Of a stretch of DNA of 52,034 nucleotides, positions 45,904-52,034 are shown one piece after another. The number at the start of each line of letters is the position of its first letter. The first letter of the stretch is position 1. The notes below the pieces were generated by a model. It saw only the letters and a list, made by a program, of their open reading frames with translations. It did not search any database and was not told the origin of the DNA. The position numbers and the translations under genes are program-made. This DNA comes from Pelomyxa schiedti (taxonomy: Eukaryota > Protista > Evosea): positions 1-52,034 of the forward strand of contig JAHLWZ010000905.1 in NCBI GenBank assembly GCA_020536535.1, given 5' to 3'.

Positions 45904-47054
45904 CCCTGGAATTTCTAGGTTTTGCAACCCTTTTTTTTTATTCGAGAAAAAAAGCCCGCCACAGCGCGAGGGAAGAAAAGAGCACCGCCGATGTTGTAAG
46001 CAGCGTTGATTTGTAGCCAATACCCTGTTGGGCGGGATGTTGTAGGAGTGGTGTTGATTTCTTTCAATAGCGGTTGGGAGGATGTTCAATGGCAAGAGGT
46101 GCTGAGAGGTCACCTGAGTTCAGTCGATGATAAAGCCTGTGAGTTAAACACCTGAAGGCATTCCAATGTGACATTCAATCAGCGGGAGTGGCGGAACCTC
46201 GGCTTCGGCGGGGGAGATTACGGGGCGCCGACACACGCTACACCAACATGTCCCACTCCATTGCCTTGTCCCACCAGAGCTCTCCAGGCAAGCTCTGGGG
46301 TTTGCAGGGCCAGCAGTTTGTCACCCTTCCAGTGGCCAAGCACACTTCCAAATCACTGAACAGCACCCAGCCATACTATCTTTTCCCAAGGTGCCATCAT
46401 AGGTATCAACTGAAACCACTTCAACACTTCATGTTGTTCAGGTGCAGTTGAAGCCACACACATACACAGAAGCATACATTCCTCCAAGGCATTTTTCTCC
46501 AGGAACCAAGCTTGTGCTTCACTGTCCCAGTTGCAGCTTCACAAAAGCACTGCATGCACAATGTCACTTTGTGCCTGTGGAAGTGATTGTTCAACAACTC
46601 TTTGAGATGTTCAAGTCAGATTGGTGGATGCTTACAGCTTGATTCCACAACTAGCCTGTCCTAAAGGTCCTCTTTGAACCCTTAGGTATGTATGCTTCTG
46701 TGTATGTGTGTGGTGTGTGTGGTGTGTGGTGTGTGGTGTGTGCCGGGGAAGTGAGGTACTCCCCAAAATAGAAGTGAAGTGAGGAGTGGCTTGTGACAAG
46801 AGAACTGCTCCCACTATTTCTGATTAATAGCCTTTACTCGCTTGCTTTGCTCTTTTGCCCTCTGCTGTAAAATGTGAGTGAATGTGGCGAGCGAGGCACC
46901 TCTCTCGTTTTTCTCACATATCTTCGCGTGCTATCGCCCGTCAGAATTGGAAATTTAAAAGGGAGCGAGCCACGACCGCGCCGCGGCGGTGCCAACCTTG
47001 CACGGCGATAATGAGTGTGCACCACTCCCCTCTCACATTCACACATACCCGGCC

Positions 47055-47074
47055 CGCCGCTCGCGTATCCGCAC
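47055..47074 (+). promoter_or_regulatory. shared upstream motif CGCCGCTCGCnTnTCCGCAC (copy 1)
   Basis: 18/20 identical to the reverse complement of 50090-50109; both lie 5' of a repeat arm. Function is inferred. Confidence 0.45.
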
Positions 47075-47162
47075 GCAGCTCACAGGCCTTCACGCACGAA
47101 AGAGAACGTGCCCGCGTAAGAGAAATTGCTTTTTTGTTTCCTCCCAGTAGAAATAGGCGAAA

Positions 47163-47431
47163 CACCCACAAGTACGGTTCGGGAAAGAAATCGGCATGGA
47201 ACACGGGACGAAGAGGACTGGAATTCATGTGAGGGTGGAGGGGGGGTGACCAGAATCGGTATCGGAGGTGGAATCCTTTCCCGGTAACCGGTCTCACAAA
47301 AAACGGGCGCAGACCACGTCGCTCGGAGGCGAGTTCCCCACGTCCATGCCATCCCCGTGGGTCAAATCACCTGGTCGCCCAAAGGCCTCCCCCCTCACCT
47401 TGTTTTTGTTTTCTTTTTCGGTTTTCTTTTT
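47163..47431 (+). repeat. 269-bp inverted-repeat arm 1; candidate structured ncRNA gene or transposon TIR
   Basis: Exact reverse complement of 49619-49887 by manual comparison; internal stems; ends in T-runs. Confidence 0.9.
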
Positions 47432-49618
47432 GGGTTTTACTTGTTATTCTCTATCATTTTCGAATTAATTAATAAAACAAAAACAAAATGACAACAAGCA
47501 ATTTTTGTGTGATTGTGCTTGCTTGTGGGTGTGGGCTGGATGTTTTTTGGATCCTTGATCTTGATTTCTTGGTGCTGTGCAAAGATGGGCTTGCTTACTT
47601 ACCTTAATGGGAACGAATTTATTATCCCTGTACTTTGGTGGCAATGATTGGGTATTTGTGTGTGGTTCTGGAATTAGCCTGGTGTTATTGGGTTGATTTT
47701 TGGTTGTTGTGGTTGTTGAACTTGTGATGATCGACAGGACTGGGGACTGTGATTGTGATTGCGATTGTGCTTGTGCTTGTGACTGGTGTGGGAAGAAGGG
47801 GTGCGCATTGGATGGCTGGCGGTGGATTTGCAAAAACTCAATTGTTCCGCAAGTATTACTGACACTTCCCGTGACTCTTCTCGGGTACCTACTTTCACGT
47901 CACTGTCAAAATTGGTTAACACATAGTCATTGGATACCCTTTGGATTCCAATTTCAGTCGAATTCAGTGGCTTTCATATGTAAAAATATAAGAACCACAC
48001 AAGCAACGTCTCTACCTCCGGCACCACCAAAGTGAAGAATTTGTACAAATTCCAGTCTCTTTTGTCTTGAAATTAATTATGAAAGGTTGAAAAAAAGTGC
48101 TTACGCCCACCAGTGTGCATCACCCGTAATGAATATAGATGGGGGTCCATACGAGCGTGAAAATGAAAACTCTTGGCACAGCGTTCTGCTCGGGCCAAAA
48201 GGCCATGAACAAGTGACAAGTGATTCCCCCCGGTTTGAGTGAAAAACAACTTTGGTACTGCCCATAGTGTGATCCCATGTAAGAGAACAGCTGGGAATTC
48301 GTGACACCAGTTGAAGAAGGTCTACCAATTTACGTTATTGGATTGGTTTAAGTTTGCCAAAATAATGAAAAACACCTTGATCCATTGAACAATATCCCCG
48401 GCAATACTGAGAGAAGCGGAAAAACGAGAGAGCTGGTCAGAAGAGGCAAGCCATAAATATGGGGTATTATTTTACACACATACATATGACTGAACTATGA
48501 ACCCAAGAAAACAACTAAGCACCGATTGTTCTTCCAGTTTTTCTCTGAGAATCTCCTCCTCAAAGAGCACATTGCTTTTCGGAACAAAGGACTTGATCTA
48601 ACAAATAGTGCTAAACGTTGAGAAGAGAAGCAATAATGGTGAGTTTAAACCATATCCAGGTGTGTTCCTGGGGTCCAGTTATGTTAGTCTGGTCCACAGC
48701 TGTCTCCAGTTCATCAACGTAACCGGAGTGGAGTCCACCTATTTTTTTTTAAGTCAAGATATTTTTAGATCGGAAGTGGAAAAACAACATTTGGGTTCTG
48801 TGCCGAAAGGTTCTTGACTCGAATTCTTGCTTGTTGTATGAGCCCAGCCAGCCGAGGACAAAGGTTCCAATTGTTGTTTTTAGAAAAGCACAAAGGCTTC
48901 AGAAAAACTTGTTTTCGAGGTCGAACACATGTGAAGGAGGCTGTGACCCAAGTTGGTCATGCTGAGAGACACGCTGTGCTTGGACCTAATTTAGCGTTGA
49001 GGACCTGACGAGGAGGGACAGAGAGCAAGCAGGAAGACAAAAGTTTTTCTTGTCGACAGACAAGCCAGCTGTGATCCTTGAAGAAAGGGGAACACTTAGT
49101 TGAACATTAGTGACCAGAGGTGGTTCCATTCATAGACGAGGTGCCGAGGCAGAGGCATAGTTCTCGTTCTTGTTGGGCGCGCGCGCGGCGCCAGTGTGGG
49201 CGACGGCACTCCCTCCGAAGTGAGAAATCCCACTCAATTTCGGAATGGAGCCTGCTCCAAAAACGGAACGGCTGCTGGCCAAGCTGCTTCTCACGACGAT
49301 GGAAGTGTCGATTCTAGCCAGCAGGCTGGAAGGAGATGAGCACACTGCCACCTGCAATGGAATTATGGAAGTCTTCACCGAATCCAAAGCTGGAACAGGG
49401 AGGGAAGATGTTGGGCTGAAGGCACGAGCAACCTCACATTGCACAAACACCAGGCAAGCAAGCCACACTGTATGGAGCTATTAACCTTTCAAGAGCTGGC
49501 TTGATTATGGGAAGAAACTGTCCTACCTTTCTCAGGTGGTTTATGACCGGTTTCAAGTCTCCTTTCAACCACCTTGGATGTCAAAAGGAAAATAAATGGT
49601 TGGAATAAATACCAAAAA

Positions 49619-49887
49619 AAAAAGAAAACCGAAAAAGAAAACAAAAACAAGGTGAGGGGGGAGGCCTTTGGGCGACCAGGTGATTTGACCCACGGGGATG
49701 GCATGGACGTGGGGAACTCGCCTCCGAGCGACGTGGTCTGCGCCCGTTTTTTGTGAGACCGGTTACCGGGAAAGGATTCCACCTCCGATACCGATTCTGG
49801 TCACCCCCCCTCCACCCTCACATGAATTCCAGTCCTCTTCGTCCCGTGTTCCATGCCGATTTCTTTCCCGAACCGTACTTGTGGGTG
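49619..49887 (-). repeat. 269-bp inverted-repeat arm 2; candidate structured ncRNA gene or transposon TIR
   Basis: Reverse complement of 47163-47431; the terminal T-run is T10 here versus T5 in arm 1. Confidence 0.9.
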
Positions 49888-50089
49888 AAAAAAAATAAAA
49901 GTTCCAAACAAAAATGAAAGACAATCAGTCTTGAGTCTGGGATGATGGCGCACACAGGTTGTTGGGTGGGTATCCTTCTCCACTGATCTCCTTCTGAAGA
50001 AGACACCCTCTATCCCCAGAGTGTTCATTCCGCGACGGAGGAGAATCAAAAAAGAAGGCAAAGGAAGGGTGGTGCGCGAGTGGGTGTGT

Positions 50090-50109
50090 GTGCGGACAAG
50101 CGAGCGGCG
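50090..50109 (-). promoter_or_regulatory. shared upstream motif CGCCGCTCGCnTnTCCGCAC (copy 2)
   Basis: Minus strand reads CGCCGCTCGCTTGTCCGCAC versus CGCCGCTCGCGTATCCGCAC at 47055. Confidence 0.45.
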
Positions 50110-51622
50110 TTCTGGGTGCATGCACAAACGCGCCACCGATCTACTGATCATCCCATTCCCCAACGAACAAGTTGGGGAGTGCGCGTGTGTGTTTTTTTTT
50201 TTTTTTTTTTATCATGAACAGCCGCGAGAAACGCCCTCTTTTCAATTTTTGGATGGAGGGGGGAAACGCTTCGGCTGTTCAGCTTCCTTTCATGTTTCTC
50301 TGCTGGTTCCTGCATGCCATCCCTCCCCTCAGGAGCTTTTGGTAGTTTTTACTTCGCCAATCTATGGAGAGAGCATTCCCACCGCCATCCTAAAATACAC
50401 CTAGGTACTACTGTCTTCCTGTAAGTTGCAATTAATAACAAACAAATCTCAACAATTGGTGGATTAAATGGAAGGATATAGAGGAGGAAGAGGCAGTAAG
50501 TGAAACCTCTAAATTGTGCCCAGTGTCAATATTCATGAGATAAATAAATCCTGGATGATGCGCTTCTTGGCATTTGGGCGAGGCTCTGGAAGACAAGCAG
50601 TCACATTGTGTGGGACACTCTCATAGGGAATGATTGGTCAGACCCCTTGTGCGCAGCAGCACGAGTTCCATAACCACTCAATCAACAATGGCAAGTGCGC
50701 GCAACCACTCAGAACAATTATCCCGCCGGTACCAATGAGCTGCCATGGCCAGCCAAGACGATATCATTGCATACAGGAACAAACCCCATGCCATGACATT
50801 GGAAGTGCTGCTCACCAAATCGTTCATCAACGAAGCAAAGTACATCTGGGCGCTTTTTCTCCCCTTCAACAACAGAGTGGAAAGAGCAGTGCACCCAGTG
50901 GGAAGAAACCGGTGGCCCCTCAAGGAACCCAGGACGGGCTCCGCCTTGCCTGCAACAGCCTCTTCCAAGAATTCCAAGCGGTCGCTGACACTGCGTACAG
51001 CACTCCAATGGAAGAATACCACAAGTCAGGCGGAACTGTGCGTGATACGCACGCCATTTTTCCAACACAACCGGCACGCACACACTAACAACCCACTGTC
51101 AACTAGGGATTCCTATTTGCATTACTCAAGGCACTTCCCGTTGTAGTGTTCAGCCCAATAGCCGCCACAGGTTGTTCCACCGTCTTTGCGTTCCTGACTC
51201 AATTACTCACACGATACCTCTCCACAGAAACAGCACCACCAGTCCACAACCACCTCCACTTTCACCTCCACCTCCACAACCCAACCACCAACACAAGCAC
51301 AAACCCAGATCCAAAATCCAAAATACACAACACACAATGTTCCAAAACACAACAACCCTTGAGAGGGAAAGTCTTTCCGTGTGTTTTTTCTCAGAAAGAC
51401 TTTGACCAAAAAAAATCCTTTCTCCTTCTCCAGACACGAGAACGGCCCACTCCCCCACTTCCACAGGCACAGTTTCTGGTCCGCCCTTTGGGCCAGCTGA
51501 ATCCACCAGAGCATAATTTTCCCTCCACCCACTACCGAGAACAAGACCCTGATCAAAACATTTTATTCTGTCACTTTGGCAACGCTAGCCGGTCCGGCGT
51601 TTTTTTTTAATTGAGCCACTTG

Positions 51623-52034
51623 ATGGCAGCACACGCAGCAGCACCAGTTACGGCCTCAGCGAGTGCAGCGACGGCTTCGCCGCAGCAACAGCAGCAGCAG
51701 GTGCCCAGGGGCACGATGCGGTTCGACAACGGGGACGTGTACGAGGGCGACGTGCTGCCCAGCGGGGAGATCACGGGCGTGGGGACGTACACCTACACCA
51801 ACGGCGACGCGTACAGCGGCGAGTGGCGGCGCGGCGCCATGCACGGCGCCGGCACCATGCGCTACAGCGACGGCAACGTCTACGAGGGCCGCTGGAAGCG
51901 CGGCAACCGCTCGGGCTGGGGCGTGTGCCGCTTCGGCAGCGGCCACGTGTACCGCGGCCAGTGGCGTGGCGGCGAGCAGCACGGCCGCGGCGAGTGCCGC
52001 TTCAAGAACGGCGACGCGTACGACGGCGAGTGGC
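51623..52034 (+). CDS. MORN-repeat protein, truncated by the window end
   Basis: ATG at 51623; translation MAAHAAAP..GTMRFDNGDVYEG..GVGTYTYTNGDAYSGEWRRGAMHGAGTMRYSDGNVYEGRWKRG... Absent from the ORF track because there is no stop in the window. Confidence 0.9.
   Translation, partial: MAAHAAAPVTASASAATASPQQQQQQVPRGTMRFDNGDVYEGDVLPSGEITGVGTYTYTNGDAYSGEWRRGAMHGAGTMRYSDGNVYEGRWKRGNRSGWGVCRFGSGHVYRGQWRGGEQHGRGECRFKNGDAYDGEW

Follow-up and report, generated by a model that had tools for sequence, protein, structure and literature searches.

Identical convergent arms on a Pelomyxa schiedti contig are probable genes for a small structured RNA with a DUSE-like upstream promoter

The window analyzed here is the whole 52,034-nt stretch of Pelomyxa schiedti contig JAHLWZ010000905.1 (assembly GCA_020536535.1). 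Near its right end, a repeat search identified two arms of 269 nt each, at positions 47163–47431 and 49619–49887, which lie 2187 nt apart and are 100% complementary (self-BLAST E ∼1e-138). A script verified that one arm and the reverse complement of the other are identical strings, and the three methods together confirm an earlier, sequence-only reading, in which the arms were described as exact reverse complements of 269 nt lying ∼2.2 kb apart. That reading had also described each arm as ∼235 nt of GC-rich sequence followed by oligo-T, and this description holds: arm positions 1–237 have a G+C content of 60%, compared with 44% in the interior and 46% in the window, and arm positions 238–269 carry the T-runs T5, T4, T5, T4, and T5. 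The flanks of the two arms share no significant similarity, and self-BLAST reports nothing outside the arms. A 31-nt block, I5, which is found at distances of 86 and 200 nt from the two arms, was considered as a pair of promoter blocks outside the arms and rejected because of these unequal distances and its absence from the self-BLAST result.

The ORFs that overlap the arms (53–118 amino acids) gave no Pfam match, and their frames are disrupted by indels in a divergent copy of the arm located on contig C698, in agreement with the earlier claim that the arms hold no credible ORF. The spacer between the arms (47432–49618) is a noncoding low-copy repeat lying outside the predicted RNA gene; its paralogues are 90–99% identical on C721 and 71–74% identical on C791, comparison with them revealed no codon periodicity and indels that do not come in threes, and the spacer gave no Pfam match. 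Protein coding was therefore rejected for the arms and the interior alike. The interval had been called gene-free, which is true as far as proteins are concerned, a spliced gene beginning only at ∼50292. The flank upstream of the right arm (flank X, 49888–50395) is common to three other copies of the arm, two on C721 and one on C1941, which shows that some copies stem from segmental duplication and that flanks have been re-assorted at the gene. A loose-end contig at 49615, which had the appearance of a sixth flank, corresponds to an unrelated A-rich stretch on C562.

At arm positions 3–12 lies the element CCCACAAGTA (47165–47174 on the forward strand, with its 7-mer core at 47165–47171), which is invariant in all copies and recurs as a motif in known noncoding RNA (ncRNA) genes. 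In Dictyostelium, an upstream element (DUSE) is located ∼60–63 nt upstream of ncRNA genes transcribed by Pol II and Pol III (PMC3188802, PMC7919456). For comparison, reference distances were taken from 18 known genes of the P. schiedti genome: the motif CCCA[CT]AA is present at an upstream distance of 58–68 nt in six of six U6 and six of six U2 genes, 63, 68, and 64 nt upstream in the genes for RNase MRP, RNase P, and tRNA-Sec, respectively, and 61–63 nt upstream of the conserved start in three SRP RNA genes. Similarly, the closing helix of the predicted RNA has its first base 64 nt after the DUSE-like element in the arms and 63 nt after it in the C698 copy, and the 19-nt extended promoter form of the arms is one base different from that of the tRNA-Sec gene. 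A second conserved promoter block is located at 47187–47201 on the forward strand (arm positions 25–39), ∼40 to 25 nt ahead of the predicted start. When the window copy was compared with the C698 copy, arm positions 1–21 and 25–39 were each 100% identical, whereas positions 40–66 were 69% identical; that is, both promoter elements are kept between these paralogues, but the spacer drifts. Around −30, the arms carry an A-rich block containing CG, as opposed to the T-rich TTTTCGAGG type found ahead of U6 and U2, a difference that counts against the gene reading. Judged by motif and spacing, the start of each arm is a putative Dictyostelium-type DUSE of the kind carried by known ncRNA genes of this organism.

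The predicted RNA (∼176 nt plus a U tail) extends from 47229 to 47407 on the forward strand, as delimited by a start 64 nt after the start of the DUSE-like element, by the fold, and by the consensus structure. A closing helix of roughly 22 bp, in which 47229–47253 (the first 25 nt of the RNA) pair with 47372–47399 (the last 28 nt), encloses three hairpins, and the fold has an energy of −78.1 kcal/mol and a z score of −2.45 in the sense orientation compared with −0.96 in the antisense orientation. The closing helix begins at the predicted start site, and its other strand ends at the T-runs. The putative terminator region (47400–47431, forward strand; T5 T4 T5 T4 T5, located by script) lies directly past this helix, with the T5 4 nt past it in the window copies and with T9–T13 directly past it in the others. 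Likewise, the U6, SRP, MRP, and P genes of the P. schiedti genome have oligo-T 3′ ends, whereas U2 is without one. In a consensus structure built from four sequences, 99% of cells were paired and two both-sided changes were detected, a result that 60 of 500 shuffles equaled; the three inner hairpins are invariant across the four aligned sequences.

Because the helix starts 64 nt after the motif and its other strand stops at the T-runs, the arm is, as modeled, laid out as a promoter (66 nt), a ∼176-nt RNA whose two ends pair to close it, and a terminator. The left gene copy would then occupy the whole arm (47163–47431, forward strand), starting where the DUSE-like element starts and stopping where the T-run cluster ends. 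The right copy (49619–49887, reverse strand), defined by the repeat search, the motif, and the script, is identical to and convergent with the left, with the DUSE-like element at 49876–49885, the predicted RNA from 49821 down to 49643, and the T-runs at 49619–49650. An RNA of ∼235–269 nt, as long as the structured element described earlier, is revised by this layout, in which the first 66 nt are promoter and ∼176 nt are RNA. As regards the perfect 269-bp hairpin that read-through was earlier proposed to give, a potential Dicer substrate, both copies come with multiple T-runs of their own as putative terminators.

We next consider the known classes of RNA to which the arms might belong. Rfam 15 returned no match in the region 46500–50500 (E up to 1), none in the whole window at the gathering score, and none for the 196-nt gene body (E up to 10); a scan of the C698 copy gave chance-level matches only, and ARAGORN called no tRNA or tmRNA. 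These results uphold the earlier statement that the arms could not be matched to tRNA, 5S, U1, U2, U4, U5, U6, U3, SRP, or RNase P/MRP, and extend it to the other Rfam families, among them 7SK, Y, vault, and telomerase RNAs. SRP, RNase P, and RNase MRP RNAs resemble the predicted RNA in size range, in having a multi-helix fold with paired ends, and in promoter type in P. schiedti, but the arms score nothing with their models, and an SRP, MRP, or P identity was rejected in view of the genuine genes elsewhere in the genome (six SRP, one MRP, and one P, all above Rfam cut-offs). Size, a Pol III-type gene layout, and a helix joining the two ends also occur in several known RNA classes, and the arms could in principle represent one such class, for example a telomerase RNA or a vault- or Y-like RNA, that has diverged beyond the reach of Rfam. 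We regard this as quite improbable: Rfam was empty even at E up to 10, SRP, MRP, and P were found elsewhere above threshold, there was no tRNA-like call, no tandem motif resembling a telomere template was seen, and several diverged copies together with a sister family (described below) would be unusual for a telomerase RNA.

The DUSE-dependent ncRNA genes of Dictyostelium include those for snRNAs, SRP RNA, and Class I and Class II RNAs (PMC3188802, PMC7919456). The arms resemble them in having a CCCA-type element ∼60–63 nt before the start, which serves both Pol II and Pol III genes, a T-run behind the gene, pairing of the 5′ and 3′ RNA ends into a stem, and numerous dispersed copies. Class I RNAs are 42–65 nt long and have a conserved 11-nt motif adjoining a short stem, with the 8-mers CCTTACAG and CTTACAGC (PMC3188802). 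In contrast, the predicted arm RNA is ∼176 nt long, has a 22-bp closing helix with three hairpins, and is without the 11-nt motif, and both 8-mers are absent from the arm sequence; on the grounds of size and the missing 8-mers, a Class I identity was rejected. The type 3 Pol III genes of animals and plants (U6, 7SK, RNase MRP, Y, vault, and tRNA-Sec) are similar in having a wholly upstream promoter and an oligo-T terminator and in giving rise to small structured RNAs. However, they have a PSE/USE where the arms have a DUSE-like element, and the predicted RNA has no sequence match to these families. The tRNA-Sec, U6, MRP, and SRP genes of P. schiedti carry the same upstream element as the arms.

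The sequence-only reading had taken the arms for a two-copy element. The P. schiedti genome, however, contains five full copies and two fragments, in addition to a longer sister family, and a search with a shorter covariance model, R1, retrieved only these five. Multicopy dispersed ncRNA genes are usual in this genome, which has at least 20 U6, at least 30 U2, and 6 SRP genes. Four of the five copies are 95–100% alike. The remaining copy, on C698, has flanks that cannot be aligned with those of the others and yet keeps both promoter blocks at 100% and the hairpins at 92–98%, compared with 69% for the promoter spacer; furthermore, both strands of its closing helix are shortened together, a CG-to-UA compensatory change is present, and the copy ends in T13.

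These copies bear directly on whether the arms are genes or merely a low-copy DNA repeat without an RNA product, that is, dead or never-functional copies (for instance, decayed relatives of the longer family) in which the promoter-like start and the T-rich end are leftovers. Such a reading is compatible with the small number of copies, four of them so alike that recent duplication could explain much of the conservation, with covariation that is not significant, and with the RNA contigs of the single RNA run (X4), which cover the neighboring gene and small parts of the spacer and none of which lies over either arm. Contigs cannot show absence, and the X4 library may be oligo-dT primed, like the Smart-seq2 libraries of the genome paper. 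The pattern in the C698 copy argues the other way: in a copy old enough for its flanks to be unalignable, promoter blocks and hairpins at 92–100% beside a spacer at 69%, two helix strands shortened in step, and a T13 still intact would need either selection or several gene-conversion tracts coinciding by chance with the functional parts. On balance, we consider a dead repeat rather improbable and favor a reading in which both arms are full genes for a small structured ncRNA, each with an external, snRNA-type promoter and most likely transcribed by RNA polymerase III; this we hold to be probable. The earlier proposal of an unclassified Pol III-type ncRNA gene is thus supported in its core, and now has a promoter as its basis in addition to the T-runs (together with the helix and the empty Rfam scans); no transcript from the arms appeared in run X4. 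Outside this genome, metagenome contigs were scanned for exact words from the conserved blocks, which would catch near-identical sequence only, and gave no match.

A sister RNA family of ∼262 nt is present in at least six copies (two on C869 and one each on C958, C4162, C216, and C866). It shares with the arm RNA the extended promoter (two mismatches in 19), the spacer block AACACGGGA, the core motif GUCGC ... GAGG.CGAGUUCCCC ... GUGGG, and the layout, with a closing helix from the start site to the T-run and one hairpin whose tip varies. In contrast, it is ∼90 nt longer, the sequence of its closing helix is unrelated, it has one more small hairpin, and beyond the core the two families share too little identity for BLAST or model R1 to connect them. 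The sister family folds with a z score of −2.94, and an Rfam scan of it gave nothing meaningful. In two of the sister copies the promoter sequence is a different one, with CCCAYAA again 60–62 nt ahead of the start of homology. We tentatively suggest that the arm RNA and its sister form a class of structured, Pol III-transcribed RNAs not described before in Archamoebae, which would provide the RNA subunit for a new ribonucleoprotein. The proposed marks of this class are the common promoter, the closing helix from start to terminator, the hairpin whose tip is free to vary, and the conserved core motif.

Two long, perfect inverted repeats around a noncoding interior of 2.2 kb are also what the termini of a DNA transposon or foldback element would look like, here one of 2.7 kb (47163–49887); AAA is present on both outer sides, and the arm terminus CACCCACAAG faintly resembles CACTA-type transposon ends. 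However, the AAA belongs to an A8 run and so is no real target-site duplication, the interior contains no transposase or any other Pfam match, and the family of the interior occurs without arms on C791. Moreover, other copies are solo (C698 and C721:92793) or paired with a fragment in direct orientation (C721:171081 with 172751), and the outer flank X is conserved along with the arm at four loci. Transposon termini were rejected on the basis of the solo copies, the lack of a target-site duplication and a transposase, and the co-duplicated flank, which leave this explanation with hardly any credibility; copies that always occur as paired termini with target-site duplications, the pattern named earlier as evidence for a transposon, were not what we found.

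A different question is whether the inverted arrangement, or just the 100% identity of the arms, is an artifact of whole-genome amplification and de Bruijn assembly. Seven single cells were amplified for the assembly (SPAdes --sc, k up to 121); chimeras produced by amplification are frequently inverted, and a 269-nt repeat exceeds k = 121 and may collapse to one sequence that is traversed twice. In addition, unitigs from the DNA runs are interrupted at the borders of the arms, with only the junction from arm to segment Y bridged by >31 nt, run X2 contains a form that skips 47117–47488, including the left arm, and the paralogous end of C721 is rearranged and stops at the contig end. Against this, all four junctions are present as read k-mer paths (X1 46743–47192, 47362–47690, and 49867–50096), and Nanopore reads were part of the assembly input. 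Because the arm-to-Y and X-to-arm junctions recur on C721 at 92–99% identity, these junction sequences are real. We regard an artifact as unlikely, although of the alternatives weighed here it is the likeliest; it concerns the arrangement only and leaves the gene reading of the arms untouched. It is plausible that the identity of the two arms is held by selection or gene conversion, and assembly collapse of two nearly identical copies could also account for it.

If each arm is such a gene, we propose the following course of events. The DUSE-like element at arm positions 3–12 and the block at positions 25–39 would recruit the transcription machinery, and transcription would start ∼64 nt past the element, at or near arm position 67. 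The ends of the resulting RNA of ∼176 nt would pair into the long closing helix around the three hairpins, and the polymerase would stop in the T-runs directly after this helix. Our inferences from the gene layout concern transcription itself, the polymerase, where exactly the RNA begins and ends, and its function; by analogy with other RNAs of this gene type, the likeliest function would be that of the RNA part of a ribonucleoprotein. At the level of DNA, duplication and recombination or gene conversion within the gene are proposed as the way in which the family evolves, and would have spread and re-assorted the five copies; because of such events, the homology of the window copies would be confined exactly to the gene, with the flanks re-assorted. 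The convergent arrangement looks like a by-product of recombination among copies and not like a functional hairpin, and we consider it very unlikely that double-stranded RNA feeding RNA interference additionally arises from the two identical convergent copies.

If the RNA is expressed, the arms and their sister would provide an orphan structured RNA family for a lineage with unexplored ncRNAs that includes relatives of Entamoeba, and the combination of the DUSE-like motif, ∼63-nt spacing, closing helix, and T-run offers a search recipe for more such genes in this genome. The promoter result is of wider use than the RNA family itself. In motif and distance, the Dictyostelium upstream element is conserved in an archamoeba, where it would serve the U6, U2, SRP, MRP, P, and tRNA-Sec genes, and this conservation points to an ancient promoter architecture common to a large part of Amoebozoa.

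The two arms of the inverted repeat (left, 47163-47431, plus strand; right, 49619-49887, minus strand) were confirmed by repeat search, self-comparison and a string check to be exact reverse complements of 269 nt each with 2187 nt between them, as the sequence-only reading had it, and self-comparison of the window revealed no similarity between the two sides beyond the arms. Each arm opens with CACCCACAAGTAC, its form of the motif CCCATAAGTA, which is also present upstream of the SRP, RNase MRP and RNase P RNA genes of Pelomyxa schiedti. Counted from this end, arm positions 1-237 have a G+C content of 60% (44-46% in the surrounding region), and five T-runs occupy positions 238-269.

Upstream regions, including those of six U6 and six U2 genes, were aligned by anchoring on CCCA[CT]AA, and the motif was tested on 18 known small-RNA genes (six U6, six U2, three SRP, RNase MRP, RNase P and tRNA-Sec; loci L017-L034 and L042). 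It was found 58-68 nt upstream in 18 of 18: 64-65 nt before the conserved AGCCUGGG of U6, 58-63 nt before U2, 63 nt before RNase MRP, 68 nt before RNase P, 61-63 nt before the point where the three SRP genes become alike and 64 nt before tRNA-Sec on contig C1146. The tRNA-Sec gene, confirmed by ARAGORN, emerged from a search with the arm's extended 19-nt motif, its own version departing from this at a single base. The upstream sequence element of Dictyostelium (DUSE) was given as [AT]CCCA[AT]AA, some 63 bp upstream of numerous ncRNA genes (PMC3188802); its distance from the start site is about 60 nt, Pol II and Pol III genes alike use it, and the authors expected neither sequence nor spacing to be conserved outside Dictyostelia (PMC7919456). 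We identify CCCA[CT]AA in P. schiedti as the DUSE.

In this sample, the form CCCAYAAG preceded the Pol III genes SRP, tRNA-Sec and MRP, and CCCAYAATT preceded U2 and most U6 genes. Because the element stands exactly 64 nt before the tRNA-Sec gene (anticodon TCA; L042:1565-1651, plus strand, about 9231-9317 of C1146) and T14 follows it, tRNA-Sec in P. schiedti would have an external promoter, as in animals; the gene itself implies that P. schiedti uses selenocysteine. The small-RNA genes of this genome are dispersed over different contigs and highly multi-copy, numbering 20 or more for U6, 30 or more for U2 and six for SRP RNA.

In each arm, the motif begins at position 3. A further 64 nt on, position 67 (47229 in the left arm; 49821, minus strand, in the right) is where the closing helix, the arm's strongest long-range helix, starts with its 5' strand; the 3' strand extends to position 236-237 and is followed by the T-runs. 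The predicted start, the first and last bases of the closing helix and the terminator are thus all consistent with a single predicted transcription unit, giving an RNA of about 176 nt. This RNA is predicted to fold into a closing helix of about 22 bp enclosing three hairpins (-78.1 kcal/mol, z = -2.45, equalled in 2 of 200 shuffles); the antisense strand gave z = -0.96 and the full 269-nt arm z = -0.91. The folded RNA ending in T-runs that was first proposed is thus retained, but at about 176 nt, with the first 66 nt of each arm reassigned to the promoter. Overall, we consider each arm to be probably an unclassified Pol III-type small-RNA gene; the original proposal to this effect was right in substance, and its basis is now the promoter, the start-to-terminator helix and the conservation profile.

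The family check against Rfam 15 returned no match for the arm region (E up to 1), the whole window (gathering score) or the gene body alone (E up to 10), and ARAGORN found nothing. SRP, RNase MRP and RNase P RNA were each rejected as identities for the arm, the genuine genes (six in the case of SRP) lying elsewhere in the assembly and scoring above their thresholds.

BLAST and a covariance model (R1) revealed five full copies in the assembly rather than the two first noted: the window pair, C721:171081-171350 (97% identity), C721:92793-93048 (95%) and C698:20789-21036 (about 75%, flanks unrelated), along with two fragments (arm 1-74 on C1941; arm 200-256 at C721:172751). The sister family described below comes in addition. 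The inverted pairing was found only in the window, and the arms are therefore rejected as transposon termini, the alternative under which copies would always be paired and bounded by target-site duplications; the pair has no target-site duplication (only AAA, within an A8 run), and the interior between the arms contains no Pfam match or coding signal. Flanks re-assort among copies. Upstream flank X (49888-50395, minus-strand reading) is common to the right copy, both C721 copies and C1941, and the left copy has an upstream flank of its own; downstream flank Y (47432-47693) is common to the left copy and C721:171081, and downstream flank Z (49367-49618, minus-strand reading) to the right copy, C721:92793 and the C721:172751 fragment. 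The X-gene-Y arrangement on C721 thus unites the flanks of both window copies; sequence comparison places recombination between copies at the gene itself.

The end of C721 (170590-175845, L008) is a rearranged paralogue of window 47163-50395, running X, gene, Y (262 nt), 1.1 kb of other sequence, the same-orientation fragment (arm 200-256) and then the inverted window interior to the contig end; this layout is compatible with flipping of the interior through recombination of inverted gene copies or with an assembly mis-join. An additional CCCATAA lies at 49505-49511 (minus strand), immediately beyond the right copy in its downstream flank; it is kept in the C721:92793 paralogue and destroyed in C721:172751, and no definable RNA was found behind it.

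The C698 copy, which is an old duplicate because its flanks are unalignable, matches the window copy at 100% in the motif block (arm 1-21) and a second block (25-39), 69% in the spacer before the start (40-66) and 92-98% in the three hairpins. Its motif-to-helix distance is 63 nt. The 5' strand of its closing helix lacks 14 nt and the 3' strand is correspondingly shorter, GGGG...CCCC still closing the RNA with T13 directly after; one CG pair is replaced by UA and three GU pairs by GC or AU, and the first-hairpin tip bears a 30-nt insertion. Covariation, tested on four sequences, is formally weak, the observed score being reached by 60 of 500 shuffles. These comparisons are suggestive, but no proof, of a conserved RNA structure.

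An extended-motif search (C869:6997-7328, plus; C869:21578-21896, minus; C958:302-621, plus) and BLAST (C4162:326-644, minus; C216:42783-43033, minus; C866:10993-11243, plus) identified a sister family without an Rfam match, whose predicted RNA of about 262 nt has the DUSE-driven gene layout, a T-run end and a fold z of -2.94. Common to both families are the promoter blocks and a core motif in which GUCGC and a variable loop precede GAGG.CGAGUUCCCC and then a hairpin closed by GUGGG. The sister closing helix spans predicted start to T-run as in the arm, in wholly unlike sequence, and the sister copies vary chiefly at the tip of a long hairpin. In C216 and C866, whose promoter sequence is unlike that of the other sister copies, homology to those copies starts 60-62 nt after a CCCAYAATTT element, which provides an independent marker of the start site. 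In our view, the strongest argument for the RNA fold being the conserved property is the recurrence of one layout in two families whose helix sequences are unrelated.

The assembly (52,367,397 bases, 5337 contigs) corresponds to the published one of 52.4 Mb and 5337 scaffolds, for which MiSeq, HiSeq and Nanopore reads of seven single cells, taken through whole-genome amplification, were assembled in SPAdes --sc (k up to 121); the transcriptomes are Smart-seq2 (PMC8887013). Coverage was judged from Logan contigs, with one single-cell RNA run (X4), maybe oligo-dT primed. DNA unitigs extend from flanks A, Y and X, three of the four, into the arms and then break, as a repeat should at k = 31, and the arm-to-Y junction alone is bridged by >31 nt; depth on the arms is about 2.5-3x that of the flanks, as expected from shared words, and the variants within them are those of the C721:92793 copy. 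The reads thus neither prove nor disprove true identity of the window copies; gene conversion between close inverted copies would fit, as would assembler collapse, possible for a 269-nt repeat given the k used and the amplified cells. In DNA run X2, at about one third of the local depth, 47116 is connected to 47489 by a lone C, leaving out 372 nt that contain the entire left copy; this form, not shown by DNA run X1, might represent an allele that lacks the left copy, or else a deletion or an amplification chimera.

X4 contigs cover the adjacent spliced gene (with exon 50292-50402 and GT..AG intron 50403-50521) and short stretches of the spacer, and none lies on either arm. This absence is mild, not decisive, evidence against strong expression, as it concerns contigs of one single-cell library, and oligo-dT-primed libraries under-sample Pol III RNAs. 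The idea that read-through of the convergent pair gives a hairpin for Dicer is unsupported. One X4 contig links 47747-47882 to 50067-50141 across 2184 nt (no mismatches, 4-nt overlap GGGT, no GT..AG ends), and X1 and X2 DNA contain a different joint that shares this right end, from 47931 to 50067; template switching, or a rearranged copy missing from the assembly, may account for these joints.

The transcribed, spliced protein gene at 50292-52034 (plus) closes the window with repeats of 69-72-nt period (51710-52027) resembling MORN repeats, and C869 and C216 carry paralogues of parts of it at 87-90%. On the other side, a 97% inverted repeat of 30 nt (46454-46483/46684-46713, 200 nt apart) lies in a stretch, about 46350-46690, of which at least six further contigs (C809, C633, C1572, C2299, C474 and C1186) carry 85-93% relatives; this stretch is perhaps a dispersed repeat of small size, conceivably a miniature inverted-repeat element.
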